Shown piece after piece: positions 1 to 59,274 of a stretch of DNA of 64,000 bases. Both the position numbers and the translations under genes were made by a program. The stretch comes from Macrostomum lignano (Eukaryota). The DNA lies in NCBI GenBank assembly GCA_002269645.1, contig NIVC01001971.1:62001-126000 (forward strand), given 5' to 3'. The notes beneath the pieces were generated by a model that did not search any database, was not told the DNA's origin, and saw only the letters and a program-made list of their open reading frames with translations. Positions within the stretch are counted from its first letter, which is position 1. Each line of letters starts with the position of its first letter.

Positions 1-414
1 TAGTGCAGGATGGAGTTGGCCCAACCAGTGAGGATGTCAGTTGCTGTGAACTTTTCCAGGCTAAACAAATTTGTTGAGCCGATGCCAGGAGAGAATTCTA
101 GCTTAATCCAATAGTTGCCTGACAAAGATTTTTGCTAATACTCGTAGATTGTTATCTGGTTTGGTCGGCAACTCATTTGATCCTCGATGTCATATCTGAT
201 GTCTACAATAAGCTGATTTAAACTCTTTGTTATTTCTTTAATTTTTAGGTGATGAAGGTAAACGATGGAAACTTTTCTATACTGAATCTTTTTTTGTAAT
301 TTTTCCTCAAATTTAGTCCTGCGATGCCTTGCGTATCGCATGCGCAGCGCTTTCCTATTGTAACGGTTTATTACTCCAGCCTTGCTGAAGCACTTGCAAT
401 TGTTAAATGGCACA

Positions 415-1175
415 CATCAGGTCCCCAAAGTAGCACGCATCAGGCCCCAAAAATGACACTCATGAGATCCCCAAAATGGCACCCAACAGATCCCCAAAAT
501 GGCATCCAACAGATCCCCAAAATGGCACCTAACAGATCCCCAAAATGGCACCCAATAGATCCCCAAAATGGCACCCAACAGATCCCCAAAATGGCACCCA
601 TCAGATCTTCAAAATGGCACTAATCAGATCCCCAAAATGGCACTAATCAGTTCCCCAAAATGGCACTCATGAGATCCCTAAAATGGCACTCATGAGATCC
701 TTAGAATGGCACCCATCAGATCCTCAAAATGGCACCCATCAGATCCTCAAAATGGCACCCATCAGATCCCCAAAATGGCACCCATCAGATCCACAAAATG
801 GCATCTATCAGATCTCAAAAATGGCACCCAATAGATCCCCAAAATGGCACCCAACAGATCCCCAAAATGGCACCCATCAGATCTTCAAAATGGCACTAAT
901 CAGATCCCCAAAATGGCACTAATCAGTTCCTCAAAATGGCACTCATGAGATCCCTAAAATGGCACTCATGAGATCCTTAGAATGGCACCCATCAGATCCT
1001 CAAAATGGCACCCATCAGATCCTCAAAATGGCACCCATCAGATCCTTAGAATGGCACCCATCAGATCCTCAAAATGGCACCCATCAGATCCTCAAAATGG
1101 CACCCATCAGATCCCCAAAATGGCACCCATCAGATCCACAAAATGGCATCTATCAGATCTCAAAAATGGCACCAA
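415..1175. repeat. Minisatellite, 23-bp unit (ATGGCACCCATCAGATCCTCAAA)
   Basis: Directly visible tandem array; explains the repetitive ORFs at 324-1292. Confidence 0.95.
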
Positions 1176-1612
1176 CAATTCGATTCACTCAACACCGTAA
1201 TTTTTTTTCAAATACGAGCTAAATATGATTTGTTAACGTTATGCATATGCATCACATCCATAAATTTTCTGTTCTGCTTGGATTCGAAATAATAATAATA
1301 ATATATTTGCACAAAGTCTACTAACACATTTTATTCCCACCTATCAAATCGCACCTGTGAGTCAATCAATTTGATTAATTTTATTCAGCTTAAAGCAATA
1401 TTAAAAAGTTAAACTTTAACTTTCTACATACTATTCGCTGGATATTAAGAGTAATTCTTGTGCTTTAAATGAGTCCAATTTGCTATTATCACTTTCGCTT
1501 AAAACTTTTTTTATAATTTAATTTTGCGCACCTGACATACCAGTATATAGCTGCACTAAAATAACATATTGCACTTTCAAAAGTATAAAAATAAAACCGT
1601 CGCCGCACGCAG

Positions 1613-4600
1613 ACGATGGCCGCTCAGAAAAGAAATCAACTTGGCGCGTCTCTGGCCTTGGCCGCCAGGCAGAGTCTCAACGACGAAGAGCTGGTGAGTC
1701 AGTGCTTAACTGGGAGAATTCCACCATGATTGGGGAATTCCCATTGATATGATTTATTGTCAGAATTTATTGAATCCAATTCGATCATTATTATTAAGGA
1801 ATCCCTATGTGGCCATCATTAGAGAATCCCATTTATGACCTTTGGAAAATCCCTATATCGTTTTGATAGGGAATTCCAACCTCCATGAAGAACGACCCCT
1901 TTGATAGGGAATCCCAAATGCCATTATTGAGAAATCTCTAGACTGCCTTGATGGGAAGCCCCATCAACCAGAATCCTATCCGCTATGAGAGGGGAATCCT
2001 ATCCCGTCTATCCTCTATGAGAGGGGAATCCTATCCCGTCTATCCTCTATGAGAGGGGAATCCTATCCCGTCTATCCTCTATGAGAGGGGAATCCTATCC
2101 CGTCTATCCTCTATGAGAGGGGAATCCTATCCCGTCTATCCTCTATGAGAGGGGAATCCTATCCGCTGTGAGAGGGAAATCCTATCCGCCATGAGGGGGG
2201 AATCCTATCCGCCATGAGGGGGAATCCTATCCGCCATAAGAGGGGAATTCTATCCGCCATAAGAGGGGAATCCTATCCGCCATGAGAGGGGAATCCTATC
2301 CGCCATAAGAGAGGAATCCTATCCGCCATGAGAGGGGAATCCTATCCGCCATGAGAGAGGAATCCTATCCGCCATGAGAGGGGAATCCTATCCGCCATGA
2401 GGGGGGAATCCTATACGTCATTAGGGGGAATCCTATCCGCCATAAAAGAGGAAACCCCTCTGTTGTGAAAGAAAAACCCCATAAGTACGAGCGTACGAAT
2501 AGACGTTAAGAAATATTCGCATTCTCACCCAACAGAAGTCGCACGTGTACAAGAAAACTCTGCAGGCAGTCTGCTACCCAATCAGCTGTACAGTGCCGCA
2601 CAGCTTTCAAGTTTGGTCGGCCACCAGTCCCACCTACTGTCACGAGTGCGAAGGCCTGCTGTGGGGCATCGCCCGTCAAGGCGTCCGCTGCAGCCAGTGC
2701 GGGGTTAAGACGCACGAGAAATGTAAAGACCTGCTGAATGCCGACTGTCTGCAACAGGCGGCTGAGAAATCCTCCAGACACGGAGCCGAAGACAAGTCGG
2801 CCGCGATTCGGCAAGCGATGCAGGTGAGATGGTCATTCGTAATTTGATAATATTGGAGGAATGCAGGCTTGAGGGCCTAATGGGGCGGAAGTAATGAAGC
2901 AGGACTGACTAAGAGTGGAATCTATCTGGTTCCTTTCTGATATCCGATATTGGGAAGCTAATAAACAACTCTTTTTCTGCAGTGGGTACTGCCACTATCC
3001 ACTGTCTTTAAGTAAATCTGGTCACTACCCACTGTCCTTCAGTAGGTCTGGTCACTACCCACTGTCCTTCAGTAGGTCTGGTCACTACCCACTGTCCTTC
3101 AGTAGGTCTGGTCACTACCCACTGTCCTTCAGTAGGTCTGGTCACTACCCACTGTCCTTCAGTAGGTCTGGTCACTACCCACTGTCCTTCAGTAGGTCTG
3201 GTCACTACCCACTGTCCTTCAGTAGGTCTGGTCACTACCCACTGTCCTTCAGTAGGTCTGGTCACTACCCACTGTCCTTCAGTAGGTCTGGTCGCTACCC
3301 ACTGTCCTTCAGTAGGTCTGGTCACTACCCACTGTCCTTCAGTAAGTCTGGTCACTACCCACTGTCCTTCAGTAGGTCTGGTCACTACCCACTGTCCTTC
3401 AGTAGGTCTGGTCACTACCCACTGTCCTTCAGTAGGTCTGGTCACTACCCACTGTCCTTCAGTAGGTCTGGTCACTACCCACTGTCCTTCAGTAGGTCTG
3501 GTCACTACCCACTGTCCTTCAGTAGGTCTGGTCACTACCCACTGTCCTTCAGTAGGTCTGGTCACTACCCACTGTCCTTCAGTAGGTCTGGTCACTACCC
3601 ACTGTCCTTCAGTAGGTCTGGTCACTACCCACTGTCCTTCAGTATACACTAATAACCCTAGAATTTCATTTTAGAATCCTAAAAATTATCTGAAAAATGC
3701 GAAAAAATAACATATTTTGCATCTTGCAGGAGAGAATGCAATCTAGAGAGCAAGCTCGACCAGAAGTATTCGAGCTCGTCCGTCGAGTATTCGGTGTCGA
3801 CGAAGCGAGCCATCGGGAGCAGCTGCGCGCGGTACAACTCTCCATTCTAGAGGGCAGCAGCAACTGGAGCGCCAAGATTGCCATCACTGTGATTTGCGCG
3901 CAGGGTTTGATAGGCAAAGATAAAACTGGCACCTCCGACCCCTACGTCACTGTGCAGGTGGGCAGGCTGAAGCGTCGAACAAAGACTGTTCCGCAAGAAT
4001 TGAACCCAACCTGGAATGAGAAATTCTACTTGTGAGTGAAAAGTACTTTTCGACTATATAGAATAGAAGAACGTACTAAATTAAGCTACTTTTTTCATCA
4101 CTTGATTACAGCGAGTGTCACAACTTTTCCGACCGAATCAAAGTTCGAGTTTGGTAAGTCGATTCCATTTTATTAAATGTACGAGCTGACTAAATGTTGA
4201 TTATCAGGAGCTTGGAGCAGAAAGCAGTGTGTTACAAGCTGAGATTTGTGTCTTTAACTGAGATTGGTGTGTCTGTAGCTGAGATTGGTGTGTCTGCAGG
4301 TGATATTGGTGTCTTTAGTTGAGATTGGTGTGTCTGCAGCTGATATTGGTGTGTCTGTAGCTGATATTGGTGTGTCTGCAGCTGAGATTGGTGTGTCTGT
4401 AGCTGATATTGGTGTGTCTGTAGCCGCAGAGATTGGTGTGTCTATAGCTGTGATAGGTGTGTCTGTAGCTGAGATTGATGTGTCTGTAGCTGAGATTGGC
4501 ATGTCTGTAGCTGAAATTTGTGTCTGTAGCTGAGTGTGTCTGTAAGATATTTGGTATTAAAAGTTGATGATGGATACTTTTTGTAGACTAATTTTTGTCT

Positions 4601-7600
4601 GCGCCTAATATTTTCCAGGAAGTTCAATTTTGATTTCATTAAATTTAAAGACACGCTTTGTTTGCTTAAAAGGAAAGTACAAGTAGTAATTCATTTTTGG
4701 CTTTCATTAGTTCGTATTCGCAATTGCGTACGATTACTATTTGAAAGACAAGTTACTGAGGTCTGTCAGATTAGCTCCTAAAAAGAAAAGTGCCCAATAA
4801 CACCCAAAAAATTGCTATGATAAAAAAGGGACGAAGACAACGATCTGAAGTCAAGAATTCGTCAACGACTCACCAGAGAGTCCGATGATTTTCTCGGTCA
4901 GACTCTGATCGAAGTTCGCACTCTATCGGGCGAGATGGACGTCTGGTACAACCTGGGTAGGTTGGCCACTCCCCTAACCCGATTGTCTCTCCACTAACTC
5001 ACCCGGTTGCTAATAACTGTGTTAACTAACTCTACACGTGAGTTAAAACCCAGTTCTCGAAATCTCTTCTCGCTACTGCTAGTCTACCTGCCAAGTCAAA
5101 CCGAAAAATGTCTGTCTTTATGTGTACACTGTAGTTACGTCTTTGCACTTCTCTAGTATCGTGTGTCTAATAAGACGGGCAACTTTGACACAGTGCTCGA
5201 GTGTTAATTGTCTGACGCAAGATATTACGTGTGGCCGAAGTGAAGTTCAATGATTTGGGGTTAATGGGGTGGAGGCTAACGGGCCGACCAGAAAATCGAT
5301 AACGGTACACCATCAAGTTTACAATTCGGGGGGTTGGCCCAGTCAAAAGCTACGCTGGTATAAAGTGGATTGGAAAGATCGGGGCTAAGTGGGGTGGGGG
5401 GTCAACGCGCCGACCAGAAAATCGATAACTTAACACGCCCAGGCTAAATGAACAGCGGCAAAAACTATTGTAGCAAAGCGCGCCTGCCCATCGTGGATAA
5501 AAGGTTTGGGGTAAAGGGGTTTAACGGGACCGACAAAAAATCGATATGACATCCACCCAACTCACACGCCCAGGCTAAAGAATGCAAGTCAACTTGAGAA
5601 GACAGTGTCTAGTGTGTGACAACAGTGTGACAAATAGGAACTAATCTCCTTACGCATCATTCATACCTTTTGAAAAATTAATCAGTTTAAATGCAATTTA
5701 AATTCGATGGTAAGAAAACCTTATTTACGGCTATTCTGGCTTATTCTCAGGACACACGGTACTCCTATGTTGTTTTAGATTTTTGAGGTTGCACCTTGCT
5801 TTTCGGGTTTTGCGTCTGTAGCTGAAAAAACCGAATCCCGAAAGGCAAAGGAAATTGAAATGATAAACATATCGAATGATAGACTGCTGTAACCATTTTA
5901 TTTTTCTAGCAATTTCAGTAGCCAATTTCAGTAGCTAATTTGTATTCAGTACGTTTTAGAAGAGTTTTTTATCGTGTTTCATACTTCCTGTGATACTCGT
6001 ACCTATAGCGATAGCGTGGACTTAAAAACAACAATGAAAAATATTTCTTTTTGATTCCAAATTAGGCTAGAAAGACTGACAGACCTTTAAAAAGGTAGCT
6101 ACTCGTAGTCAAATACGCACTCTGTCGCCTATTCAATAATCAGGGATGAGGACAACGACCTGAGGGCTCGAATCCGTTCAAAGTTAACGTCCGAGTCGGA
6201 CGACTTTCTCGGTCAGACAATGATCGATGTGAGCAAATTGTCCGGCGAAATGGACGTCTGGTACACTCTCGGTAGGTTGCAAGTGGACCCAGCTTGAATC
6301 GGCTGTGTTGCTAAGAACCAACTATCGAAGTTTAGGCATTATGGTTAGGCAGAAGTTTTAGTTAACAATACAAACTATTAAACACTTTGGTGCTTCCTTA
6401 AAGCCTATTTACTATATTTGTTCTGTCATTTAATGTTGTAAATATTTCTTACATTTTTATACATTGTCAAATATGCATGTTGCTACGCTAGGCAGTTGTT
6501 TTGCAACAAGACGACTGGTAAGGATATGAATGACACCTATTTTATGGAAATTTGTGTCAGGCTAGTATTTTATCTCGAAAAGCCTGAGAAATACATGTAC
6601 TACATTGGAGACTAATTAGCAAGCGTGATTTTATAAAAACTCACTTATAACTTTCTACACATCCTGTTACATTATAAATGTTATAAAATATTTTATTGCT
6701 TGATACAAAACTTCGGAACTTGCTTAGAATCAGTGCAATATTATTTTTCCCAATTGTAAAGTTGCTAAACTTGGGAATCAAACTCCGATCAAACGCATTA
6801 CAACTGCCCCGTATTACCTGTGCATTTTGAAACGTAATTAAGCCTCTAGAAAATCTGAAAAACTTCTCTTTGCTCCCAATGGTCCATACCTGTACAGAAA
6901 ACAGTTGCGTTTTATTTTTTGCAATACGCTCGTAACTATTCACTTCAGAGAAGCGAACGGACAAGTCGCTGGTGTCGGGCGCTGTGCGATTGCACATCAG
7001 CGTGGAAATCAAAGGCGAAGAGAAGGTCGCGCCGTATCATGTGCAGTACACCTGCTTGCATGAGGTGAGGCTCGATATTTGCATATTTTACTCGTTCAAA
7101 CAATTTCTTTTCATTCGTTTAAAAATGGATTAAAAGTTAAAATGATACCATTAGCTAAGGGAGATCGACAAACTGAGTTCTTCAAATTTGTCTGGTATAT
7201 TTTCTCAAAACGGATTGCCAGATAAATATCGCTCCCTATCGTCTCAAGAACAATTTAAGAACGTTCTTAAGTCGTTATTTTATTGCCTGTTGAAATAAGA
7301 TCTCTTAAAAGTCCATTTCGTGATATGCAAAGTAAATGCCTGTTGCTAGATATGTCTAGCTCGTATTTATATTTAATTAAAATATAGATGTCTTAAAACC
7401 TTAAAACAAGAGTCTCCAGGCATGACACTACACACAGCTTGACACTATTCACGAACCAAACTTACAGAACTTATTCCACTACATGTGCGAGACATCGAAA
7501 CAGGATGGTAAACAGGAAGTCCGACTGCCCAGACAAGCCATCGGACGAGGCGAGAATGCGTGGAAAATCTACTTCGAAGCTGAGATGCAAGAAATCGTGG

Positions 7601-10600
7601 ACGAGTTTGCGATTCGATACGGCATTGAGAGCATCTATAGAGCGATGACGTGAGTGAAAAATGCTCATTTGTTTATTTAATCGCAGTGATTTGCTAATTA
7701 AGTTGGTTGAATACACTGTCTGACCGTGATGCTCTACATGTATGCTTTGTTAAAATGCTTCGTACAATTATTTCCCTGTTTTGCGAAGCTATTTCATCTT
7801 GTCTAAACTTTCGATAGTACGTTTGGTAGCCACGCCATTTGACTGTTGACCACTTGAATGCCACCGATCAAGTACATCTATCTACCTTGCCTTCTTACTT
7901 GCACGCCAGATTTCCCGTGTACATGACATGTTGGGCTTGTAAGGGTGCATCTTAAAACGAATTTAGGCAGTGATCCTTTGGTGAAAAAAATTTCTTCCAA
8001 TATCTTAGAAACAAAAGTGCATCGTTTTCAGGAGAAGCAATCAATTTAATAAGCTAAGGAAGTTCACATTCGTTATACGAAAAATATGCAAGATTGACAT
8101 TGAGTACTACAGTGTAATCTGGATGTTCCTGCCCTCTCGTTAATTCCTCTCTCCCTCTTTCTTATCCTTATCCTGCATGAGTTCTGAGAACACTTGCTGT
8201 GTATATGAATGCTTTGTATTCTGTACAAATATTTCTATCCGCTGCCACTTTCATTCTGGGCGATGCGTCTATTGATCGATCCGTTATTATAAGACAGAAT
8301 CCAGGGAGAGGGAGGAGAGAGAGAAGGGGAGCCAAGGCGCGGAAAGAATTTCCTGGTCAAATTTCTCCTCTGCTCAACCGCGCCCATAACAGTTCCTGTT
8401 CTCTCCTGACCGCTACAGCATCCCCTTTTTTCTGTTCATTCTTTCTCCTCTCACCGCGCTTCTCCCTCTGTGATGCCCCGCAAGCAGCTGCAGCCTCGTT
8501 TTATCATTTATTCTTGGCCTATCGTCAGGCCTCTCAGAAATCTCTTGCACTCTGTCTCTCTCCCCATCGGAGCCACTTCAGTACCTCTTCTATAGCCGAT
8601 CCAATGGTTGATTCGGGTTTCGCACTAGAAATGCAATACTGCAGAAAAAACCTAATGTCAAACACATTCAACGTGTTTTACGTTCAGTTCAATTCATCTA
8701 TACTGAACCCACTGCCAGGCGCTAGACAAAGGCTGCAGAGAAATCGTTAACAAAGATGACGATTCTGTGTAGTTTTTGCAACCCAATTATCTTGTATGCA
8801 TTGAACTTCAATCGGGTTGGAGTAAAATTTTCAGTAGAACTACTAGCAATCTAGTGCCCCTTTTTTGGGGCGGCCAATAATCAAAGGACGAAAATTATTT
8901 ACGTGAATCCTTTTAAGAGACAAAGACACATTTTCTTAAAAGCATTCATTCTTCAGTTTCGTAAATCCCATTGTTCGAGAAAATTTATCAGGGACAAAGA
9001 TTTTGGGGAGCTAACAAAAAATGAGATACACTGGTGGACATTGAAGAGATCCACTACTACTGTTCAGTAGTGTATTATTGCACACTATTATTCCTTCGAT
9101 TTAGTGCGCAATTAAATAATATCGTTACCCGCTCGGGATGCAAGTTGCGTAACTTGCAGTTGCGATCGGAGAGAAAAAGAGGATACTTTTCAAAGTCCAG
9201 CGTTTATTTTTAAATAAGCTACATGTAGCTTCTGACTACTCAGCTTTGACATCTCAGCAATTCCCCCCGTAAGCCTTGACATCTCAGCAATTCCCCCTGT
9301 AATGACTCGGGAGTCAGTATTGATTTTGCAGTGCGAAAACGCTTGGACCTCCAAGAAGGGTGAGAGTGCCTATATATATTTGGGCCCTCAGGCCTCAGCC
9401 AATCATGTGTGGCTACGTAATTGGTATAAAATGCATACGAGCTCGTAAAAGGGGAGAGGTAAGCTGTGCAGAGTACAGTAAAAGAGTACAGTGAGTGAGC
9501 ACCCCGCACTGCTAGGCACCCCGTTTAACAACAACAATTGAGTGCAGGGCATGACACCCCATAAGCTGTGACTTCTCAGCAATTCTCCCGTAAGCCTTGA
9601 CATCTCAGCAATTCCCCCCGTATTACTCAATGTGAGCAATACTTAATGTGTTATGTGTAACGGTGGCGTCCCTGGAGCAAATAGCGCATGCTGATGTACA
9701 CTCAGCAACATGTTAAAGTTTCCACCCCAAGAACTGTTGGTCCACAAGTAGCAGCTTTAATTCAACTTAGCCATAAAAGCTCATTCACACTGCCCATCTG
9801 ATGAGCAAGCAAATCACACGACCAATGCACAAAGAAATCAAATTTGATGTTAAGTTGTGTGATCACACAAAAATGGGCCTTATATGATAGTGGTGTGAAC
9901 GAGCATAAACTTTCTAGTCTCTCCTAACCAGCCTAAGCTAGGTCTTGTTACGCAAAGTTCATCACCCGCAGTCGAGACGAAAACCGCGCGCGTGTGATGT
10001 GAATTGCGTCAACTTGGAGCTGAAATCTGAGAACAGTTGACCACTGGTTTCGGGGTGGTCACAAACTTTAATATGTTGCCGGGTGTACATTCAATGTACG
10101 CTGCCGTCTAATTATTTCTACCCCCAGTTTTGTGTACCCTCTCTCCTCCCAGCCTCAGCGCGGGCTCTAATTGGCTAAAGGTTGATTTATATTCGCTGAC
10201 CAACAAGAGTCAGCCAATGTTTGGCAGTCCAATTTGTTTACGAAAAATGACCAATCTGAGCCTGACCGTGCCAGTCTGTCTTGGCGAGCGTAGGAGACTG
10301 TCTGCCTGCGAGCTTCAACATGCACAGCAGCAGCAGCAGCAGTTGCAGATTAATCCAGTTGAACCTCGACGGCGCAGCATAGCTGTGCCTAGCGTCGCAT
10401 CTTCCGAGACCGAATCACCGTCGCATTCAACCTCGTCCCCTTTGCCGTTCAACTCTCCATCTTTCAGGCATTTCTCCTGTCTGACAACAAAATCGTTGAG
10501 CACCGGAGTGCCAGCCGTGATGTCCAATCTGCTTGCTAACATCAACGCATTCTATGCGCACAGCGCCACCGGGAATTCCGTCAGCGCTAACGACCGTTTC

Positions 10601-13600
10601 GCGGCGTCCAACTTTGGCAAAGAGAAGTTTGTGAAACTATTGGATCAGCTGCACAACTCGCTACGAATCAGTTTATCAGTGTACCGAAACTCTTTCCCCG
10701 CCTCTCAACCTGAGAAACTGTTGGATCTGAAATCAACAGTGGATCTGCTCACCAGTATTACTTTCTTCCGGCTCAAGGTGAGATGCGTTTTGATTTGATT
10801 TGATTTTTGATATTTGTTTTATTTTCAAGTATTATCAAGGTTTTTAGCTATAGGGCCTCAAAGACGGGGAAACGTCCTTAAGTTTCTGATTTGACTTGTA
10901 ATCAATGTATACATACTCGTAGAATTCAGATTGAGGTGTCTAGCGGCCACAAATGCAAAAAAATCGAAGTGTCCGTTAGGAAAAATAGAATTGCCTCAAT
11001 TTTAGGCGTAAACAAGTTGATGTGAATTTCGAAACAGATCTTTTTGTAGTCATACTCGTATATAAAATAAGTCTCGACAGACTTTTGTTCTTCTCCGGTC
11101 ACTACGATTAAATTGAAGGGGTCTTTTAATTAATTAACTAGAAACGAGAAAATAGCAATTCACTTTCTCCCAATTCGCAGGTTCAAGACGTAGGCAGCGT
11201 GCCTCGAGCGGGCAGCGTACTGAAGGAGTGCGCACTCAACTGCTTGAAAACCACGTATCAGTTTCTGTTTGAAAACTGCAACGAATTGCACCAGCGGGAG
11301 TTCCCAGCAGCAGCTGCGGCCGCAGCAACAGAGGGGGCGTCGGAGTCGGCTAAGTCGGGCCCTTCGCCGGACTCTCTGGACTTTTGGCACCGACTGATCG
11401 AGCTGGTGGTGTCGGTGATCGAGGAGGATCGAAACAGCTACGCCCCGGTGCTAAACCAGTTCCCTCAGGAGGTCCACATTGGCCAGCTGAGCGCCTCCGC
11501 AATGTGGGATCACTTTAGTCAGGATTTGATGTACGCTCTGCAGGAACACGAAGAGAAGAGGCCGTGCAAAACGTCCGAGTACATGAACCTGCTGTTTAAG
11601 GTGGGCTTCTGTGGATTTAGATTTTTCCTTAATGATTTCTGCGCACTGTAAGTGTGACCTTTGAGCACAGAACTAGATTTGTTACTATCCTATTTTCAAT
11701 TTGGCGTCTGTTTTGGGTTCGCATAAATTTTTCATTGGTTCGGAGCTTCTGTCTATGGCCAAATATGACAGATCGGTGGTCTCGTCTCGAAACTGGACCA
11801 TCTTTGATCCATAGTGAATCAAGCCGTTTTGTTGTGCCAGCCTGAGTTACGTATTTATTATTTTTATGAAATCTCGTTATGCTTTGTCATAAGGCCTTAA
11901 ATGATAATGTAAAAATTTCACTACAGGTGAAGTGGCTCTACAACAAATACGTGGCAGACGCTCCGCCGCACAAAGGCTCCGTACCTGGCTATCCACTCTG
12001 GTTCCAGCCGTTCGTACTGCAGTGGCTAAGCGAGAATGATGAAGTCTCCATGGAGTATCTGCACAGCGCCTATGCTAGGTAAGGTTTTGAACTATATAGT
12101 TTGCAAGTCAGTTTCAGTTATTTCAACTTCTCACTAGATCATTTGAGAGGTTGCAGCGCACAGAATGAACAGCAGCGGTATTACTCGTAGATAACCCACC
12201 AAGACGAATGTCGACCCTCGGCTCACAAGGTGCCAGTCACGCCGATTCTTGAGCTCGCCCACGCTGATATGCGTAGACAGGCCCTGACTTTCTCGTCGTC
12301 TAGCATGTACACTCTCTGAGCCTTGGGGTAGTCCTCAATCGCACCAGCCCCGGTCAATATTCGTTGCACCTCCCCAAATCTATATACGAGCTATGTACTT
12401 GCATGCAATCGAATCTGGGTACTATATAGCGCGAGAGTCAGATGCGCTAACTGCTGTGCCACTCTGCCCCCCCCCCCCCGATATAGACTTATCTTTGATT
12501 TTACTATTGAGGCCTCAATTCGCACAAGTGTATCATTCAAAATGAACATTTGAAATAACGAAACTCATTGTTTGTAGCGACTCACTTCTAATAAGACCCA
12601 AAATGACAACTTTTAAGTAAAAGTCGCGAATTTGTTTATGTAATATTGTTTTTTTTCGCCATCAACAGAGACCGGAAAGACAGCTTTCAAAAGAGCTCAG
12701 ACCACGCACTGTTCAGCACGTCTGTTGTTGACGTATTTACTCAGCTCAACCAGTGCCTAGATGTAGTAAAGAAGCTGGAATGTCCAGATCCAGCAGTTGA
12801 AGCCGCTTTCATGAGTCGATTCAGCGGCACAGTTGTCAAAGTTCTATTCGCGTACGCCGACATCATCGCTAAAGACTATGGCAACTTTACTGGCCAGTCT
12901 GGCAAAGCCTGCGTGCTTATGAACAATGTGCAGCAGGTTCGAGTGCAACTGGAGAAACTCTACGAAGCCATGGGCGGCCAGGCCATGGAAGCTGAGACCA
13001 AGGACAAGCTACAGGTAATAAATTTTTCAATTGCAAATTTTGTGTTTGCTTAATTGTAGCTTCTTTCGTGATTACGTGATAATTAGGACATTTCAAATAA
13101 TAAAAAGCTTTAATGCTAAAAGAAAAAAATGACTACAAGTACAACATACAACAAGAACTAGTAGATATCGGCACCAAAAATGGAGACCGGACGGGAGTAA
13201 TACTTCAGATCAAACCGTCCATTTCTTAGTCAACTGGTCCGACAAGTTATCGATCGCAGTGGGTTTAACTCGAAGCTTTACTTCTCAGGCTCCACTCCGG
13301 CGCTTAAGCCCTTTTTCATTAGAAGACAAAAAGCAAAGTCTTTAGTGAAAACCCTCGAGACCCCTACAAACTCTGCAGGAGCTGCAAGATCGACTGAATA
13401 CCGTACTGGACGATCTGGCGGCGAGATTCGTTTCTACAAAATCTAGCGAAATTGTCGCTGCAGTCCGTGAGGTCGGCTGCCTGCTGCACAAACACGTGCG
13501 CGGTGGAGCCGGCAGCAGTGGCGGTGGGTCAGGAAGCACAGATCCGCAGGCGGAGGCTGATATGATACTGCGGCCACTGATGGAGCTTTTGGACTCGTCT

Positions 13601-15861
13601 CTGGGCATGCTGGCTGTCGAATGCGAGAAGGCAATTCTCAGGCGACTCTTGAAGGAGATGTGGCGTGTCACCGTGGCGGCTCTAGAAAAGGAAGTTGTGC
13701 TGCCACCAATCAGCGATCCTAGACAGGTGAGCAGTTTTTAGAAGCGCTTAGTTACCGAGCAAACTTTATATAAACAAAGAGGCAATGTCCCCTTTTTAAA
13801 TTTAAAGTTTTACACCAAGTTTACAGAGCAAACTAATTTTACTTGAGCAGCATAACGTTTGCCACTTGATTGAGTTTTCAGCCAATCATGATTTTATGTT
13901 TAGGACGCAGCCTCAGAGCCACGGCTACTAGTCTTCCATAATCAAATTTCAGCTATTCCTCAATCTGAGCATCCCAGCTAAGGCCAAAGTGGCCGGCGTT
14001 AGCCAAGGCCTGCTAAGCAACATCTCCAGCATATCAACCCAGGTGTCCAATGTAACATCCGTGCCAAATATTAGCAACGTGTCTAACCTGTTGCAGGTAA
14101 AGAAAGCTAAGAGGCGCGTTGAAAATAGCGTTGCCGAACGTCGCACCTAGTCTTGCTCACTTGATCCATGTTGTTTTGCACTTACGGAGATCGCAAATTT
14201 CCATAGATCTCTGGCTATTTATTTACTAACAGTAGCATCGAGAGACATACACAAATCTTTGCCAATCGGCGATCTTATCTACATGAATGTTGTGTCTTCA
14301 GTCATTTGATTTGTCTGTCGCCTTTAATCTCCTATTGCTTTCAGTTAAACTTTCGTCCAGCAGCTTGTATTTCAAGCAAATCCCTTTGCTTGCTTATGCT
14401 GTCTAGCATCCAACCCAGACCCTTAATATGAGTATAGTGCCATTTCTATTTTTTCGTTACCGCAAATGCGCAAAATGTGCCGTTATTTTTCTATTTACGG
14501 TGTCTTTCTCATGAGTTAATCTTTATTATTGCACTATATTTCACCGTTTGTAGGAGTTTCGTTTCACACTACAATATTCATCCATTCTTGCATTCCAGCT
14601 ACATGTCAGCGACAATAGCTTGCACTTTTAACCTTTTTAAATATCCTCTCCAATCAACAGGACACTCTATCAAAGGATCTAGAGAAGACTATGTCTCCCA
14701 GGCAGTGCGCAGCGATCCAGGTAGCCCTAGAAACTGTCCGGCAATATTTCCACGCTGGCGGCAACGGTCTAAAGCTGGCTTACCTGGAGAAGAGCGCCGA
14801 GTTGCAGTCGTTGCGCTACGCCTTGTCGCTTTACTCTCAGACGACCGATTCGCTTGTGAAAACGTTTGTAGCAACACAGGCTGGCCAGGACCGGCCGGCG
14901 GTAGACGAACCTGTCGGCGAGGTGTCAATCCAGGCGGATCTTTTCAGGCATCCTGGCTCGGGCGAGGTCAAGGTCACTGTTAAAGTCGTTGCAGCTAATA
15001 AGCTTCAATGGGACACCAGCTCAATGTTTCGACCGTTTGTTGAGGTTAACTTGATTGGGCCGCATCTGAGCAATAAGAAGCGCAAGTTTACCACGAAGTC
15101 CAAGAATAATTCGACATCGCCAAAGTACAACGAATCGTTCAGTTTGTAAGAAAAGTTTTTTCTGTGCAAATTTTTCTGTTTTGATAGTTTATAAACGGAC
15201 CTTTGGAAACGTAGGGACCTTCGGAAACGTAGGGACCTTTGGAAACGTAGGGACCTTTGGAAACGTAGGGACCTTCGGAAACGTAGGGACCTTCGGAAAC
15301 GTAGGGACCTTCGGAAACGTAGGGACCTTCGGAAACTTAGGGACCTTTGGAAACGTAGGGACCTTCGGAAACGTAGGGACCTTCGGAAACGTAGGGACCT
15401 TCGGAAACGTAGGGACCTTCGGAAACGTAGGGACCTTCGGAAACGTAGGGACCTTCGCGATGTTCAAGACCTCTAGAAACCATCAGGACCTACTGGATCT
15501 TCGGGAGCTTTGCTATTCGCTATTGGAACCTTATTTCAATAGAATTCATTCCCTCAGCATTCTGGGCACTATTGAGGATCCCGAAGCATTCGAGCTGCAG
15601 ATTAGCTGCAAAGATTATTGCTTCGCTCGAGATGACCACCTGATCGGCGTCACAGTGCTACAGATCAAGGATATCATCGAGCAAGGCAGCTGCGCCTGCT
15701 GGTGCGCCCTGGGCCGAAAGCTGCAGCTCGATGAGACCGGCTGGACAATCCTTCGAATTCTGTCGCAACGGCCTAACGACGAGATTGCGGCCGAATTTGT
15801 TCGGCTGAAATCGGAGCAACGGCAGGACAATCCGCACGGCCTTTGGCTGGGCAAAAGTTAG
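1613..15861 (+). CDS. unc-13: Unc13/Munc13 synaptic vesicle priming protein, C1-C2B-MUN-C2C region (about 1215 aa in window; likely 5'-partial)
   Basis: Exons with GT-AG boundaries and consistent phases: 1613-1693, 2536-2823, 3730-4031, 4112-4153, (4829-4956 or 6144-6271), 6949-7064, 7468-7649, 10468-10777, 11181-11600, 11927-12078, 12669-13014, 13379-13726, 13953-14096, 14661-15145, 15558-15861 (TAG). Munc13 hallmark peptides: HVYKKTLQ, C1 [29 protein letters not shown]2[17 protein letters not shown] and [43 protein letters not shown]2[10 protein letters not shown] and GSCACWC. Confidence 0.97.
1970..2450. repeat. Intronic minisatellite, 32-bp units then 23-bp units (GAGAGGGGAATCCTATCCGCCAT)
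   Basis: Visible tandem array in an Unc13 intron. Confidence 0.9.
2990..3643. repeat. Intronic minisatellite, 30-bp unit (ACTGTCCTTCAGTAGGTCTGGTCACTACCC), about 21 near-perfect copies
   Basis: Two identical units per 60-nt line; source of ORFs 2915..3652 and 3008..3649. Confidence 0.97.
4238..4545. repeat. Intronic minisatellite, 21-bp unit (GCTGAGATTGGTGTGTCTGTA)
   Basis: Visible degenerate tandem array. Confidence 0.9.
4829..4956 (+). CDS. unc-13: Unc13 C2B exon, variant A (mutually exclusive candidate)
   Basis: 128 nt, AG/GTAGGT; encodes (W)[42 protein letters not shown], close to the canonical Munc13 sequence; acceptor (TAAAAAAG) lacks a pyrimidine tract. Confidence 0.9.
6144..6271 (+). 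CDS. unc-13: Unc13 C2B exon, variant B (mutually exclusive candidate)
   Basis: 128 nt, CAG/GTAGGT, same phases as 4829-4956; encodes (W)[42 protein letters not shown] with no stop or indel. Confidence 0.85.
9298..9556. mobile_element. Solo LTR (Gypsy-like) in an Unc13 intron
   Basis: TGTAATG...CATGACA termini, 4-bp TSD CCCC (9294-9297 and 9557-9560), internal CCAAT (9399) and TATAAAA (9425-9431); removing it restores a ~30-bp tandem repeat (GACATCTCAGCAATTCCCCCCGTAAGCCTT). Confidence 0.7.
10247..10467 (+). CDS. unc-13: Candidate alternative N-terminal coding extension (internal first exon) of Unc13
   Basis: Stop-free frame from 10130 runs in frame into exon 10468-10777; ATGs at 10217 and 10247 (AAAAATGA); peptide has RRRLS, RRRS, Q6 and an S/P-rich tract; branch point plus pyrimidine tract plus CAG acceptor at 10127. 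Confidence 0.5.
12185..12468 (-). mobile_element. tRNA-derived SINE
   Basis: Minus-strand head GGCAGAGTGGCACAGCAGTTAGCGCATCTGACTC...CCCAGATTCGATT with A/B-box-like motifs; central CCCCAAGGCTCAGAGAGTGTACATGC block shared with SINEs at 34.9 and 54.3 kb. The 3' end is approximate. Confidence 0.6.
15197..15457. repeat. Intronic minisatellite, 18-bp unit (GGACCTTCGGAAACGTAG), about 14 copies
   Basis: Visible array in the last Unc13 intron; gives the GTFGNV repeats of ORF 15181..15861. Confidence 0.95.
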
Positions 15862-19658: not shown

Positions 19659-22600
19659 TGTGGCAGTTGGGTGCCACTAGTGAAACGTAAATAACAGTTA
19701 TTTAAAACAACTCTCTAAAACGCATGCAAAAGAACATTAATTTTTTTTCGTGTCCACTATATGATTTTTTTGGTTCCTCATTTTCATCAAGTGGACATCC
19801 AGCTGCTGAACATTACTTCCATCTTTTGGACAGGGCTTGTTTCCTCCCGTTGGAAATTTGTTTAAGTTTTCTTTTCCCCATTGCGACAAAGCCGTCCACC
19901 CGAAGTGTCCATGCCATGTATTTTTAATCCAGCAGTCTGTCCAGTGTTTCCCCCAATTAATGTTCATGCTATTTTATCTACTATTTATTCTGCTTGTGAC
20001 GAGTCGTCCCAAGTATCCTTGGTTAGTGTTTTTGTTGGTGTTTTTTGGTTGGTGTTTTGTTTGTGTTTTTGTGGTCTCTCTCTCTATCTCTCTTAGTTCT
20101 GACATTACATTTACCAACTTGAGTTTTACTTCTATTTTCTAAACAGTCTTGCGCACCGGCGCCCGTGGATTTCATCTTCGTCTGGAATTTAATATTAAAA
20201 GTTAGTTTGATTAACAATACTAATAATTTTACTTAATAAGCCTGCTTCATTTAATAATAAAGACAATTAATAACTCCACATTTAACCGTTGACTAAAGCC
20301 ATAGTATTTCTTGAGTCATTTGCCCGTGGGGCATAAAATAACCAAAGTTCTCATCTCAAAGAAAGCTCTGAGACCATTAACGTTCCGTAATACGTAAATT
20401 ACGGTGGTGGCAGCAACTACCCTACTGACAGTAACAAGCTCTGCAAGTCGACGCAAAATTTACGGTGTCTGAATTTACGGTGTTTCATCACTTTGAACGA
20501 CCGCGCCGCTCTACGACCGCTCCGCTACGATTACGACTACCCTCCCCCCGGACTTGAGAACCCGGCTATCGGAGTAAAACAGGAGAAGAATTTCGTTGTG
20601 ATTCGTCTGCGCGATTTCTCCGGATTAATTCGTGCGAACTCAACGCCGGTGGCAATTCAAACGCGGAATCCGCCCATCACATCGTGGAAAGCTCACTTCA
20701 TGGAAAGCTCACTTCATGGAAATTTGAAACAACTCTCTGTGCAGACAACATGATCAACCAGGCCTTTATTCAAAACGATACAAAACAACTTTGGAACTTA
20801 TTAAAAACACCAAATCCCTCAAACAACAGAGTAACAATTGATGAAAAATTTGTCATACACTTTCAAAATCTTGTAACTGAACAAGACAGCAGCATTCGAC
20901 TATCATACAATCTTCACCTTGACAACCCTATTCTGGCTGATTTAGAGGATTTCAATGCCCCATTCACCAAAGAAGAAGTTATAAAACATATCAAAAAGCT
21001 CAAAACCGACAAAGCACCTGGGCACGATAAAGTATATGTAGAAACACTCAAATACCTCGAGAACGAACTTGCTGACCTCCTATGCTCACTTTTCAACGAA
21101 GCACTCAAACAAGGAACCTTCCCAACTAGTTGGATAACAAATACACTTCATCCGATTTATAAAAACAAAGGCAGCAGTGCCGACCCCAACAATTACAGAG
21201 GAATCTGCATTCAACCAATTCTTGGCAAGCTCTTTTGCCAAATTATTAAATCCAGACTCGAAAACCTAGCATACGCAAACAATCTTATATCAAAATACCA
21301 ATACGGTTTCAAGCCCAATCACAGCACAATCGAACAATGTTTTAATCTTTACAACATTATAAACCAATCCATCTACAACAAAGAAGAACTCTTTATTGGA
21401 TTTGTTGACTATGAAAAAGCCTTCGATAGCTTAAATCAACCGACCCTTTGGTGCAAAACGGATAATCAGGGTATTAAAGGTCAAATGACAAAACTTATCA
21501 AGAACATGCATAAAAATGCCTGCTTCATTCTAAAAAAAGATGATGATGATGAAACCCAGCCAATCCCAATATCTAAAGGTGTTCTTCAAGGCAACCCTCT
21601 CTCTACCATTCGTTTTGAACTATATATTGACGACATTGTTGAATATCTTGAACTCTCTAGCGCTAGGCGCTCTCTTACGAGATCTGCTTTCCCACTCATC
21701 CTACTCTTTGCAGACGATCAAGCCATTCTAGCTAAAAACAAAGACGAACTTCAAGACACATTTACGACTATGGAAAATTACTGCAAACAAAATTACTTGA
21801 AAGTAAACGCAAGCAAAACAAAGTTTATGCAGGGCAATACCAGACAAAAAAACGACACAGATAGCATTGCTACAAAAATATACTACGACAACCAAGAAAT
21901 AGAAGAAGTAAATGAATTTAAATACCTGGGAATTATTTTTGAACCAAAAACAGCTTTAAAAAATGTATTGAACACCAAACTAAGCAGGGATATACAGCCA
22001 TGTTTTCCCTACTCCATAGGGTAAAGAATACGTCCCTAGACATCACACTCATTCGCAGACTATTTGACGCGCTTGTTACCCCCGTTATCACTTACGGTTG
22101 TGAGCTCTGGGGCCCTCTGGCTACCATGTCTGATACAAAAGCTATTGATAATATTCAGCTGAAATTCTACAAATATCTCCTCAATCTACCAAAATTTGCT
22201 AGCAACAGTGTGATATCATCAGAACTTGAGCTTACTCCAATCTCTCAACGAATCGCTAAAACCTACCTCATCTACTGGCTGAAGATTAGACACAAAAAAC
22301 TCTGCCAAACGACTCTAGAAATTTTCTACTCAAGCACTGGCCAAAAAATCCATGGAAAATGAATGTACTAAAGAAACTAGAAAGTATAGACCTAAAAGCA
22401 CTAACTGAAGATAAACTTTCCCAAAGCTTTAATAACGAGAAATACCTAGTGAAAAAGCACCTCAAGATACACAGAGAAAGAGAACTTAGCCAAAGCTAGA
22501 GAATCAGCAACATATTAAACTCTACAAAAACGCCTATCTCTACAAAAAAATCTGCAGGCCCGACCTTTCAGATTACTTCCCATGTACATTTAGAAACAAA

Positions 22601-40311: not shown

Positions 40312-42627
40312 ATGTTCGCTGTTATCGCTTGCGGCCGCCTCGTACAGACCGATTTCCAACAGGTGGACGCTAACAAGTTCACTCTGACTATACCGGCTGC
40401 TGACAAGGTCAACCACTTGGTATTCTTTCTTACCGGCCAATGTCCACTGCCCGATGGAGCCGCCGCTGCCGTGTACCTCGGCTGGCCCCAGCCGCCGCCC
40501 AGCCCGCCGGAGCCTGTCTGGAGCTTCATCGGTCACCTGACCAACGAGAAGCCTAGCGCTATATTTAAAATCGCGCGCACCAGACCGCAGGATCACGATC
40601 CAAATCATCCGTTTCTAGCTAATCATTTTGCCACTGGCAGTTGGACTGATCTCACCTGTGTGCAGGTGCGCCTTATCGCCGATCGATGATTTTACTGTAT
40701 CTCAGCAGAATTTTAAAGAGTCTCTGAACCCCAGACATTAGAGGTCCCCTCGCATTGAAAGTGTGAATATTCATCCTAACTTCAGCCCTCGCCACCCCAA
40801 CCAAAACGTGCACATGGCGTCAAAAATCTCTGCTGCCTGAGTCCCCCAACCCCAGTCACTTGAAAGTTGCCCTTACAAAAGCTTTGAGACTCGTTTCCAG
40901 GTTTTATTTTAGCATTAAAAGACTGGACCGCATCATCGTGTTCCCCATAGTTCTCATATTTTGTGCTCCTAGTTATTTTTAGACTCAATCACTAAGTTAG
41001 TTTGGGGTGGCCCTGAAAAGGGCCGTTTGACTTTCTAGTTTCCAGTCACCTTTTAATAAACAACACACTGTTCTACCCCCCCCCACCCATAGTCTCAGTT
41101 TTGAGTGGCCACTATCGCTAGATACAGGGAACTCGTAGCTGGTATGACTCTAGTTAAGCCGAGTTGGCGCCGGTTAGTACCAGGGCTGAAATAGGTTGGG
41201 TACCTAGTTTTAACCCTAGCATTATTGCAGCCACACCCGCCCTATGTGACCACTTTGTGTATGCAGGGTCAGGCTTGTTTGGGGAGAAAGAAATCATATT
41301 TTTAATAGCAGCACTACAATTGATATAGATCGCAGTATTAACAGGACTTATCTTCGTTATGTATCATTTCGTTTATGAGTTTATTTAAGGTCAAATTTTC
41401 GCAACTTGAACTACATCTTGAACAATGTGAACTTTCAAGCTTGCAAAAATGACCCACAGCAAGAAGGCAAGCAGCAGTTATTCTCTGAGCAAAGCAAGTA
41501 GGCACACGCTCTCACAGTGTACAGCGGCCTTGTGACTTTCTCATTCTTTGGCATGTGCACTCTCTGTGCGCCTTCGCCTCAGTGGAATGTGACCACTCGA
41601 TAGTAACAACAACAACACCAGTAAAAAAAACGATGACAACATAAATAACAACAACTGCAACAACTGCAACAACAGCACCAGTAATAATAACAACAACGAT
41701 AACACAAATAGCAGCAACAACAAAACCAACAACAACAACAACAACTGCAACAACACCAGTAATAAAAACAACAACGATAACACAAATAGCAGCAACAACA
41801 AAACCAACAACAACACCAGTAATAAAAACAACAACGATATCACAAATAGCAACAACAACAACTGCAACAACACCAGTAATAAAAACAACAACGATATCAC
41901 AAATAGCAGCAACAACAACTGCAACAACAACACCATTAATAAAAACAATAACGATAACACAAATAGCAGCAACAACAACTGCAACAACAACACCAGTAAT
42001 AAAAACAATAACGATAACACAAATAGCAGCAACAACACAGTAATAAAAAAACAGTGATATCACAAATAGCAGCAGCAACAACAACAACACCAGTAATAAA
42101 AACAACAACAATAAAGACAACAGCAGCAAAACACGCTGCTTGGGTCTTCTGAAAGCTGCGTCTCAGGGCGCGCCTCCGGACCAGGTCTGCCGGTATGCTG
42201 CGGCTATGATGCAGTCTACCAGCTGCAGTCGCCTTAGATCTTGCTATTGAAACCTCACTATTTCGCACAACTACGAGTATATAATTTAGCAATTGCAGAA
42301 TTAATCCTTTGCTAAGACCCCTAGTATCATTAGTAACAGTTTTTGAATAATATTAAATACAATATCCATTTGCAGGTAGGTATCTCCATAGAGCCGGTGC
42401 AAACGGTAGCAGGCATGACTCCGCCAGCGGGCACTCAGGCCGACTCCACGCCAACTATGGTAGCCTTCTCGCAGCGTATGCTAGAGAGCCTCGTGAACTA
42501 TTTGAGCAGTTTTGCTACAACTCCGCCTGGCGCTACTGAGTCCTACGTGCCAATGTCGGCCGTGACCAGGTGGTATGAAACTTTTGAACGGCGTCTGCGA
42601 CAGTTTCCCGACTTTTGGAAGACTTAG
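40312..42627 (+). CDS. HIKESHI: Hikeshi/OPI10 (Hsp70 nuclear import carrier), 201 aa
   Basis: Exons 40312-40665 and 42376-42627, phase 0. Motifs MFAVIACGRLVQTDFQQV, NHLVFFLTG, TNEKPSAIFKI, QVGISIE, WYETFERRLRQFPDFWKT. Confidence 0.95.
41004..41028 (-). other. Histone-mRNA 3' stem-loop consensus, with no histone ORF upstream
   Basis: Minus strand reads AAACGGCCCTTTTCAGGGCCACCCC (6-bp stem, TTTC loop, canonical flanks). Confidence 0.6.
41590..42125. repeat. (AAC)n-rich low-complexity array in the Hikeshi intron
   Basis: Visible; source of the poly-L/V/C ORFs at 41512-42292. Confidence 0.9.
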
Positions 42628-46700: not shown

Positions 46701-47097
46701 ATAAGTCGCATCGAGAATCTGCCATAAATCACATTGAGAATCTCTTATTAATCCCATTTTGCCCCGTTCCGTCACTCGCAGATACCACGGACACAGCATG
46801 AGCGACCCCGGCACCAGCTATCGCACCCGAGAGGAAGTGCAGTCCATGCGCCAGATGCGCGATCCCATAGCCAGCTTTAGGCAGACTCTACTCACCGCCG
46901 AGTTGGTAGCCGAGGAGGAGCTCAAAGAGATTGACCAATCAGTGCGCAAAGAAGTTGACGAAGCTGTCCAAGCCGCGAAAACTAATGCCGTGCCCGACCC
47001 GAAGGAGCTGTACACCAATGTGTACAGTCAGCCGCCCAGCGGCCAGCCCAACTATCGGATTAGAGGCATCGATCAGTTCACCTGGAGTGCTAATTAA
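43730..47097 (+). CDS. PDHA1: Pyruvate dehydrogenase E1 component subunit alpha, mitochondrial, 389 aa
   Basis: Exons 43730-44230, 45161-45513, 46782-47097. Motifs [41 protein letters not shown]-binding [10 protein letters not shown]...[17 protein letters not shown]; Arg-rich N-terminal presequence. Confidence 0.97.
44270..45100. repeat. Intronic minisatellite, 20-21-bp unit (CTGATTCTATCCGCCCCCGA)
   Basis: Fills nearly all of PDHA1 intron 1. Confidence 0.95.
45590..46750. repeat. Intronic minisatellite, 46-bp higher-order unit made of two ~23-bp subunits
   Basis: AATCTCCCATTAATCTCATTAGG plus AATCTCCTATTAACTCCACCAAG repeated; fills PDHA1 intron 2. Confidence 0.95.
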
Positions 47098-49864: not shown

Positions 49865-50500
49865 GTCTGTGTGAATATTGATGTTGCCGTGAATGCTGGT
49901 ATATGTGAATATTGATGTTGCCGTGAATGCTGGTATGTGTGAATATTGATGTTGCCGTGAATGCTGGTATGTGTGAATATTGATGTTGCCGTGAATGCTG
50001 GTATGTGTGAATATTGATGTTGCCGTGAATGCTGGTATGTGTGAATATTGATGTTGCCGTAAATGCTGGTATATGTGAATATTGATGGTGCTGTGAATGC
50101 TGGTATATGTGAATATTGATGTTGCCGTGAATGCTGGTATATGTGAATATTGATGTTGCTGTGAATGCTTGTATGTGTGAATATTGATGGTGCAGTGAAT
50201 GCTGGTATATGTGAATATTGATGGTGCTGTGAATGCTGGTATGTGTGAATATTGATGTTGCCGTAAATGCTGGTATATGTGAATATTGATGGTGCTGTGA
50301 ATGCTGGTATATGTGAATATTGATGTTGCCGTGAATGCTGGTATATGTGAATATTGATGTTGCTGTGAATGCTTGTATGTGTGAATATTGATGGTGCAGT
50401 GAATGCTGGTATATGTGAATATTGATGGTGCTGTGAATGCTAGTATATGTGAATATTTATGGTGCTGTGAATGCTAGTATATGTGAATATTTATGGTGCT
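49865..50500. repeat. Minisatellite, 34-bp unit (GAATATTGATGTTGCCGTGAATGCTGGTATATGT)
   Basis: Visible array just upstream of TXNDC17. Confidence 0.95.
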
Positions 50501-50607
50501 GTGAGCATTCACATAGGAACTGTGTGAACGTGTTGCGATTAATAGACAATAGGATGTGTAACAGCCTAGCAACACTGCCGTTTTCTGCGCATCCCACGCG
50601 CCGAGTC

Positions 50608-58770: not shown

Positions 58771-59274
58771 CCTAAGCACCCACAATGACTTACCTGCTTT
58801 TTCCAGTTTCTTAGTATCCATGACCATTTACTATGTTTTGCGGTCCTTAAACTGAAATAAACGCAGAGTTGGCCAACTGACTTTTGGATTGAGACCACCC
58901 AGCCTAAGTCTCTGGCGTTTCTGTATCGAGCAGTGCCCCTCTAATTTACGAGTATATTTATGCCATATGCAATTTCTCAATGGCAGTTTTATTAGCATTC
59001 TGAATGTCCCTCATGTGTGCTAAACTGTAAATACCCCTGCAGTAACAGAGCGTTTGTTTAGCAGTAAATAATAATCCAATATTGACTATCAACATGAGGG
59101 CGCCCAGGCTTCAGTTGCTGACTATAGAAATCTCTGATAAAATGAGCAACAGGGTTACTATCGGCTCTGCGGACCGTGCTGGTCTACTTTTTAATTGGAG
59201 CACGTGTGAACCTGCTAGCGGATGGGAATCCATTATTCAGCTGGTTCCACTGTCAGATCTGTTTTTGGAATACT

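Follow-up and report, generated by a model that had tools for sequence, protein, structure and literature searches.

Organization of the Unc13 locus

The DNA analysed here, a 64,000-nucleotide (nt) stretch of Macrostomum lignano (hereafter the window; contig NIVC01001971.1 of assembly Mlig_3_7, GCA_002269645.1, in which record position equals window position + 62000), contains a gene of the Unc13/Munc13 family and, in the 3' end of one of its introns, a candidate coding extension that may give rise to a short Unc13 isoform with MUN and C2C domains and neither C1 nor C2B. Features of this gene lie on the + strand. The 25.7-kb locus of GenBank model PAA62114.1 matched window positions 136-25861 with 0 mismatches. 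Intact upstream exons coding for C1 (about 2575-2826) and C2B (about 3742-4029, about 4131-4172, about 4830-4957 or about 6142-6273, and about 6951-7049) were located between 2545 and 7049, none of which is included in the short model of this gene. The 3' part of the canonical upstream coding exon (7426-7649), the translation of which aligns to rat Munc13-1, ends in ...IESIYRAM plus the nucleotides AC and is followed by a donor GT at 7650, the sequence being GCGATGAC up to 7649 and GTGAGTGA thereafter (GTGAGT from 7650). A 2.8-kb intron (7650-10467) divides this last C2B-side exon from the first canonical MUN-side exon (10468-10777; HFSCLTTK...FFRLK, placed by alignment to rat Munc13-1), and the candidate extension occupies the 3' end of that intron. 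The remaining exons of PAA62114.1, which encode MUN and C2C, were placed by exact spliced mapping at 11181-11600, 11927-12078, 12669-13014, 13379-13726, 14661-15145 and 15558-15861, the last of these ending with the stop codon.

The identity of 10468 as the true canonical acceptor was evident from the join of 7649 to 10468, which yields ...IESIYRAMT followed by HFSCLTTK, colinear with ...VESIYQAMTHFACLSSK of rat Munc13-1. The same junction (YRAMT followed by HFSCL) was noted in P0242 (UniProt A0A1I8IAL3), an older full-length M. lignano model in which C1, C2B, MUN and C2C are all present (Pfam: C1_1, E = 1.1e-11, two C2 domains and MUN). Alignment of the Unc13 region with rat Munc13-1 (7t7c) gave 1062 bits, and the best named relative of exon 10468-10777 in the first search was from Schistosoma curassoni. 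The MUN-C2C region is of the ordinary Unc13A/B/C type, with 60-68% identity to invertebrate Unc13, while Munc13-4 (unc-13 homolog D) matched weakly (E = 1.4e-16). Thus, the gene encodes MUN followed by a C-terminal C2C, with upstream C1 and C2B exons joined canonically, and belongs to the neuronal-type Unc13/Munc13 proteins.

Candidate coding extension and its public gene models

In the Unc13 frame, the last stop before 10468 is TAA at 10109-10111, and 10112-10467 (356 nt, 118 codons) is open, in agreement with an earlier note on this DNA, made from the sequence alone, which had described a stop-free run up to the acceptor. The candidate coding extension (10247-10467) consists of an ATG with A at -3 and 73 further codons, the 74th residue (Arg) being specified by 10466-10468; its 74-residue translation reads as the earlier note quoted it and continues into HFSCL. 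The tail is rich in serine, proline and glutamine, as claimed (S+P+Q = 39%), and the two claimed RRxS motifs are encoded at 10292-10303 (RRLS) and 10367-10378 (RRRS). With annotated splicing, the protein that begins at ATG 10247 has 861 amino acids (aa) and not the approximately 909 given previously. An Rfam scan of the window returned no match in or near the extension.

The short form that the earlier note presented as novel is already represented in GenBank and UniProt by MUN-C2C models that include the extension, each being the sole gene annotated at its copy of the locus. The models are PAA62114.1 (BOX15_Mlig034388g2), from the present locus, and PAA70914.1 and PAA73785.1 from two other copies of the locus in the same assembly, L002 and L004. 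PAA62114.1 (898 aa) is labeled 'partial', with a coding sequence from 10136 to 15861 that is unspliced at 10468. Both PAA70914.1 (BOX15_Mlig034388g1, A0A267FCH7; 819 aa; L002) and PAA73785.1 (BOX15_Mlig013739g1, A0A267FJ07; 861 aa; L004) start with MTNLSL. The proposed isoform and PAA70914.1 are 99% identical at full coverage, and the tail is identical in PAA73785.1 and longer by one Q in PAA70914.1. In the databases these entries bear the title 'C2 domain-containing protein' or are listed as hypothetical proteins without a name, and neither a mention nor an isoform interpretation was found in literature and supplements on Mlig034388 and Mlig013739.

The annotation from which these models come was built from genome-guided RNA sequencing (RNA-seq) assemblies (StringTie/TACO) and a de novo transcriptome. 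Signals for spliced leaders and poly(A) served to cut the transcripts, TransDecoder was used to call open reading frames (ORFs), and transcripts that overlapped repeats were removed for GenBank (PMC5730564). Given this RNA-seq origin, RNA continuous from about 10134 through 10468 must have been assembled. Thus, of the continuity that the earlier note predicted for 10128-10467 and into 10468, the part from about 10134 is represented, indirectly, in the models; the annotated start at this locus is not 10128. Among M. lignano transcript contigs in the Logan/ENA protein collection, neither the extension nor the canonical junction was matched at 100% identity.

Codon usage was scored as log-odds, for which confirmed exons of the window (1495 codons) were the training set and introns the background. 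The extension (10247-10465) scored +0.15 bits per codon in the Unc13 frame as opposed to -0.34 and -0.11 in the other frames, while the score was -0.34 for 10112-10246 and +0.42 for the training exons. Ranked with 37 control open frames, each 60 codons or longer, the extension would place about third. This modest signal suggests that coding potential begins at about ATG 10247.

Acceptor sites and 5' end of the transcript

The earlier note also described an acceptor ending at 10127, and a branch-point-like CTAAT (10108-10112), a pyrimidine run and a CAG were indeed noted at 10108-10127, the CAG being kept in all three copies. As stated there, an exon that begins at 10128 is out of phase with the donor at 7649; this splice would run into a TAA stop at 10178-10180, within 17 codons. 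Further acceptor-like AGs define exon starts at 10153 and 10159, both in phase with the donor at 7649 and both preceded by a good pyrimidine tract (0.87-0.93). The annotated transcript starts between 10134 and 10136, 6-8 nt past the CAG at 10127, and is preceded by GTGT; 10134-10246 is its putative 5' leader, which appears to be under no frame constraint.

The spliced leader of M. lignano is 35 nt long (CGGTCTCTTACTGCGAAGACTCAATTTATTGCATG) and ends in ATG, and trans-splice acceptors of this species are enriched in [T/C]TNCAG and coincide exactly with annotated transcript starts (PMC8629364). The corresponding sequence at 10122-10127, CCCCAG, has the CAG but lacks T at -5. The suggestion that 10127 serves as a spliced-leader acceptor found no support, as the annotated start lies at 10134-10136 and the annotation bears no sign of trans-splicing at 10127. 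As the annotated 5' end, 10127 was ruled out because the first codon of PAA62114.1, at 10136, is incompatible with a start at 10128. Moreover, the annotated start itself is not preceded by AG, so there is no sign of a defined spliced-leader site there. Leader addition at 10128, if it occurred, would place the leader ATG at the head of a 17-codon upstream frame that ends at 10178-10180. RAMPAGE data exist for M. lignano (PMC5730564).

Four CCAAT/ATTGG pentamers (10170, 10214, 10229 and 10251) were noted in an 86-nt segment that spans the end of the leader and the start of the extension (10170-10255, + strand). Nowhere else in the 64 kb, repeats and transposons aside, do such pentamers reach 4 per 100 nt, and each of the four is conserved in every genome copy. 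This cluster, which was noticed post hoc, may represent candidate NF-Y-type promoter elements, and its rarity and conservation were counted in favor of a separate first exon.

Comparison of genome copies

Mlig_3_7 contains three copies of the locus that are 98-99% identical, i.e., the window, L002 (NIVC01001198.1) and L004 (NIVC01000993.1). In a three-way alignment, 10247-10467 showed four substitutions (10264, 10315, 10367 and 10441), all four of which are synonymous only when read in the Unc13 frame, and a single indel, an in-frame CAG (Gln) of 3 nt. A CGA to AGA substitution leaves the RRRS site intact. With a quarter of possible changes synonymous, the neutral chance of four synonymous substitutions out of four is 0.25^4 = 0.004, and it is 0.0017 when only transversions are considered, all four substitutions being transversions. 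The sequence just upstream showed a different pattern: positions 10109 and 10217, neither more than 140 nt from ATG 10247, each have a 1-nt indel, and a 3-nt indel occupies 10143-10145. The T added at 10217 in L002 and L004 abolishes an additional in-frame ATG present at 10217 in the window copy and introduces an in-frame stop 12 codons before ATG 10247; consequently, the open stretch 10112-10246 is unique to the window copy. Thus, conservation of the frame, which the earlier note had put forward as a check in congeners, was evident among the three genome copies from ATG 10247 onward, as indicated by synonymous-only substitution and an indel of 3 nt, but not upstream, as indicated by 1-nt indels and the stop in two of the three copies. 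The ATG at 10217 was ruled out as a start since it occurs in the window copy only. In the other two copies, ATG 10247 is the first ATG past 10128 and the leader from 10128 to 10246 is ATG-free.

Poisson models of the substitutions and their rate gave likelihood ratios of 3.8-9.9 for coding as opposed to neutral evolution of the extension. Absence of frameshifting indels was estimated to contribute a further factor of about 2, for a likelihood ratio of about 8-20; introns carry 0.3 indels per 100 nt of a length that is not a multiple of three. The copy comparison is therefore supportive of a coding extension and not decisive.

Two differences between copies were noted apart from these. In L002, the last exon lacks 2 nt at the position that corresponds to window 15704-15705, which truncates C2C of PAA70914.1 (819 aa). 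Either this copy is degenerating or the long-read assembly introduced an indel error here; frequent errors of this kind would make the 1-nt indels on which the copy argument draws less secure. In L004, the same intron contains a 3.2-kb retrotransposon without long terminal repeats (non-LTR; L004:6204-9380, minus strand) with open frames of 410 aa (endonuclease) and 448 aa (reverse transcriptase), at the equivalent of window position about 9628, approximately 500 nt upstream of the transcript start. This element is present in the third copy only.

Interpretation of the extension

From the RNA-seq-based models, the frame-specific divergence of the copies and codon usage, the extension may be read as part of a lineage-specific alternative first exon (10128 or 10134 to 10777), the first AUG of which would open a MUN-C2C protein of 861 aa that bears an orphan tail, and we regard the chances of this as about even. 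Transcription would start inside the 2.8-kb intron or, alternatively, an unannotated non-coding exon would be spliced to the acceptor at 10127; the RNA would then pass the canonical acceptor (10468) without being spliced there and use the normal splice sites downstream. The AUG at 10247, with its A at -3 and its position as first AUG in two of the three copies, would initiate a product in which the 74-residue S/P/Q-rich tail, probably disordered and bearing both RRxS motifs, is fused to Unc13 from approximately residue 884 (Munc13-1 numbering). We infer that the transcript is a distinct mRNA as opposed to a partly processed precursor and that the 861-aa frame is translated.

The most serious alternative, which we consider credible if somewhat doubtful, is an artefact of annotation or assembly, in which reads from precursor RNA, unspliced or spliced in part, extended exon 10468-10777 upstream in a 5'-incomplete assembly of low coverage and the longest ORF, open by chance, was then called. 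The extension would in that case be plain intron and full-length Unc13, for which a model with the canonical junction exists in UniProt (P0242), would be the sole real mRNA; the UniProt-only full-length models P0242 and P0244 have no genomic locus on record. A number of observations weigh in this direction and against an alternative first exon. Thus, PAA62114.1 is flagged as 5'-partial and its start lacks a preceding AG, and the CCAAT boxes sit downstream of that start. Nor do the three models count as independent, since reads that map to several copies of 98-99% identity assemble alike. The same annotation includes PAA72286.1 (P0363, 945 aa), a paralogue model that proved to be an artefact of longest-ORF calling on a transcript with odd splicing, its N-terminus being a wrong-frame reading of one exon joined to the KRTDK exon. 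The C1-C2B half of the gene carries no GenBank gene at any of the three copies (window 1-10135, L002:1-10000 and L004:1-10000) despite intact exons, so GenBank annotation of the gene is incomplete. This gap can be explained by the removal of repeat-overlapping transcripts, as the introns are full of minisatellites, and requires no real short isoform.

The substitution record can likewise be read against a coding extension. Substitutions among copies amount to 1.8% in the extension, which equals the intron rate (1.7%) and exceeds that of canonical exons (0.55%; 7 synonymous and 6 non-synonymous substitutions), and the implied synonymous rate in the extension is several times that of the adjoining exons. 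The argument for selection rests on four substitutions among three copies of 98-99% identity. By itself, the length to which the frame is open is not significant. Although the probability of at least 119 open codons upstream of random non-coding positions in the window was 0.0064, and that of at least 85 was 0.016, the gene has approximately 14 acceptors by a rough count and the genome contains stop-free repeats. Thus, acceptor 15558 is preceded by 162 open codons from a stop-free minisatellite, and a stop-free stretch of 189 codons (8181-8747) occurs in the same intron as the extension, where a 1-nt indel between copies marks it as clearly non-coding.

Deeper conservation of the tail was not found. 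M. lignano has further Unc13 paralogues that are about 70% identical to this gene, one of which, paralogue B (locus L005), has a full-length model of 2337 aa (PAA82660.1). The orthologous intron of paralogue B, a 463-nt tandem repeat, showed no similarity to the tail and has an in-frame stop 12 codons before the acceptor, and the orthologous intron of S. curassoni (about 1.5 kb) was also without similarity to the tail. When 1.84 billion cluster representatives were searched with the tail (phmmer), there was no match, and homologues of the tail were found neither among proteins of comparable length nor among Unc13 proteins. In the absence of wider conservation, the tail, if real, is young and confined to this gene copy family.

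Other observations are not readily accounted for by an artefact. Plain intron is not expected to show four of four substitutions synonymous (p about 0.004), nor freedom from frameshifting indels when two such indels lie just upstream, nor a codon score specific to the Unc13 frame, and the leader is ATG-free in two of the three copies. The annotated start lies no more than 8 nt from the strongest acceptor-like site of the region, which is unlikely to result from mere fade-out of read coverage. In addition, the form survived the isoform filter of the assembler (isoform fraction 0.75), making a rare retained-intron variant less likely.

It is improbable, in our judgment, that the RNA is instead an unproductive or regulatory splice variant, in which 7649 is joined to the 10127 acceptor, or the final 340 nt of the intron stay in the RNA, to give a transcript with a premature stop that would be a target of nonsense-mediated decay. 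Such an RNA would lower Unc13 output without yielding a short protein. Conservation of the acceptor-like site at 10127 in all three copies, the out-of-phase splice to 10128 with its stop within 17 codons, and the annotated transcript start just downstream of this acceptor are all consistent with an unproductive variant, but the synonymous-only divergence and frame-specific codon score of 10247-10467 are then left without explanation, and the model at this locus is without upstream exons. Insertion of approximately 103-105 residues between the C2B side and MUN, through an in-frame alternative 3' splice site with an acceptor ending at 10152 or 10158, is highly improbable, for although exons from 10153 or 10159 are in phase in the window copy, with a good pyrimidine tract and an open frame to 10467, the codon score of 10112-10246 is negative (-0.34) and the insertion at 10217 in two copies leads to a stop after about 47 codons.

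Predicted product and relation to known Unc13 proteins

The earlier claim that a product starting at ATG 10247 contains neither C1 nor C2B was confirmed by a Pfam search of the short model (P0361), in which MUN (E = 6.6e-169, residues 190-668) and one C2 domain (E = 6.3e-15, residues 703-809) were the only matches. By alignment to rat Munc13-1, the crystallised minimal MUN domain begins 49 residues past the start of the Unc13-derived part. Taking residue 933 as the start of that crystallised domain, the join falls at about Munc13-1 residue 884; taking residue 859 as the classical MUN boundary, which we likewise assume, the join falls about 25 residues inside MUN.

Alternative N-termini of Unc13 isoforms arise from alternative 5' exons, and natural Munc13-family proteins that work without a diacylglycerol (DAG)-binding C1 domain are represented by Munc13-4 and BAIAP3. 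The latter have the architecture C2-MUN-C2, one C2 being N-terminal, and are encoded by genes of their own that diverged anciently; they are not isoforms of neuronal Unc13. Varied, poorly conserved and largely disordered N-termini modulate release in C. elegans UNC-13S/MR, mammalian bMunc13-2 and Drosophila Unc13B (PMC8066380, PMC3743133). In these isoforms the join lies upstream of C1 and the C1-C2B-MUN-C2C series is kept (the earlier note likewise held that known short forms keep C1-C2B), whereas the join in the proposed isoform lies inside the MUN region and both C1 and C2B are lost. Every annotated transcript of Drosophila unc-13 keeps all domains (PMC9797049), and no report of a natural Unc13 isoform limited to MUN and C2C was found in the literature.

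The closest counterpart in domain content is the engineered MUN-C2C fragment ('MUNC2C') of UNC-13/Munc13-1, regarded as the minimal priming region (PMC8066380). Such fragments differ from the proposed product in that they are laboratory constructs rather than a natural isoform and in that the proposed product starts inside the MUN boundary. In C. elegans, overexpressed MUN-C2C supported about 20% of evoked release, a single copy failed to rescue, and an added N-terminal module strongly improved the fragment (PMC8066380). The C1, C2B and X regions are inhibitory in this animal and restrain release (PMC6779330, PMC11991699). Thus, the inference in the earlier note of a priming factor independent of Ca2+ and DAG agrees with the inhibitory role of C1 and C2B but was overstated in view of the poor priming by engineered MUN-C2C. 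The product would probably prime weakly unless the tail contributes targeting or regulation; any priming of vesicles by it would presumably escape control by Ca2+ and DAG.

A fuller proposal, which we regard as rather unlikely, is that M. lignano makes a natural MUN-C2C Unc13 from an intragenic promoter, in which a young tail with kinase sites would replace C1-C2B and priming would be ungated by Ca2+ or DAG and perhaps gated by phosphorylation. If the short isoform is real, it would be, to our knowledge, the first natural form of Unc13 to dispense with the autoinhibitory C1-C2B module. It would provide a natural test of MUN-C2C alone, as the counterpart of the engineered fragments that define the minimal priming machine, and would show whether a short disordered tail can replace targeting by the M domain or C2A (PMC8066380). 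A functional test is feasible since M. lignano is tractable to transgenesis (PMC5730564). If the isoform is not real, the result serves as a warning that PAA62114.1, PAA70914.1 and PAA73785.1 in GenBank and UniProt are 5'-truncated Unc13.

Other features of the gene and window

Two C2B exons of the Unc13 gene, at about 4830-4957 and about 6142-6273 (+ strand), are near-duplicates that resemble mutually exclusive alternative exons. Older models have both in tandem, in this gene as well as in two paralogues (P0242, P0244 and P0245), while P0363, a paralogue-B transcript model, skips both with a resulting break in the frame. An open stretch of 48 residues at about 13932-14147 (+ strand; codon score +0.22) is included in P0242 and, in similar form, in paralogues, and is omitted from the three RNA-seq-based models; it is probably an alternative exon within the loop that links MUN and C2C.

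Many minisatellites that are stop-free in several frames, with long spurious open frames as a result, were noted at 300-1220, 2977-3650, 4200-4530, 15190-15470, 51000-51700, 55300-56500, 59200-60500 and 61150-61700. Any statistic based on open-frame length is therefore inflated in the M. lignano genome.

Elsewhere in the window, Rfam identified a histone 3' stem-loop on the minus strand (40983-41029; 39.5 bits, E = 4e-8) with no histone open frame seen beside the match; the + strand open frames that flank it (40312-40689 and 42343-42627) are ones we take to be Hikeshi-like. Features recognized by eye from translations, all on the + strand, were a non-LTR reverse-transcriptase open frame (20684-22362), exons of pyruvate dehydrogenase E1 alpha (43730-47097) and, at 50437-50930, a thioredoxin-like (TXNDC17-type) open frame that a proline-rich repeat follows.

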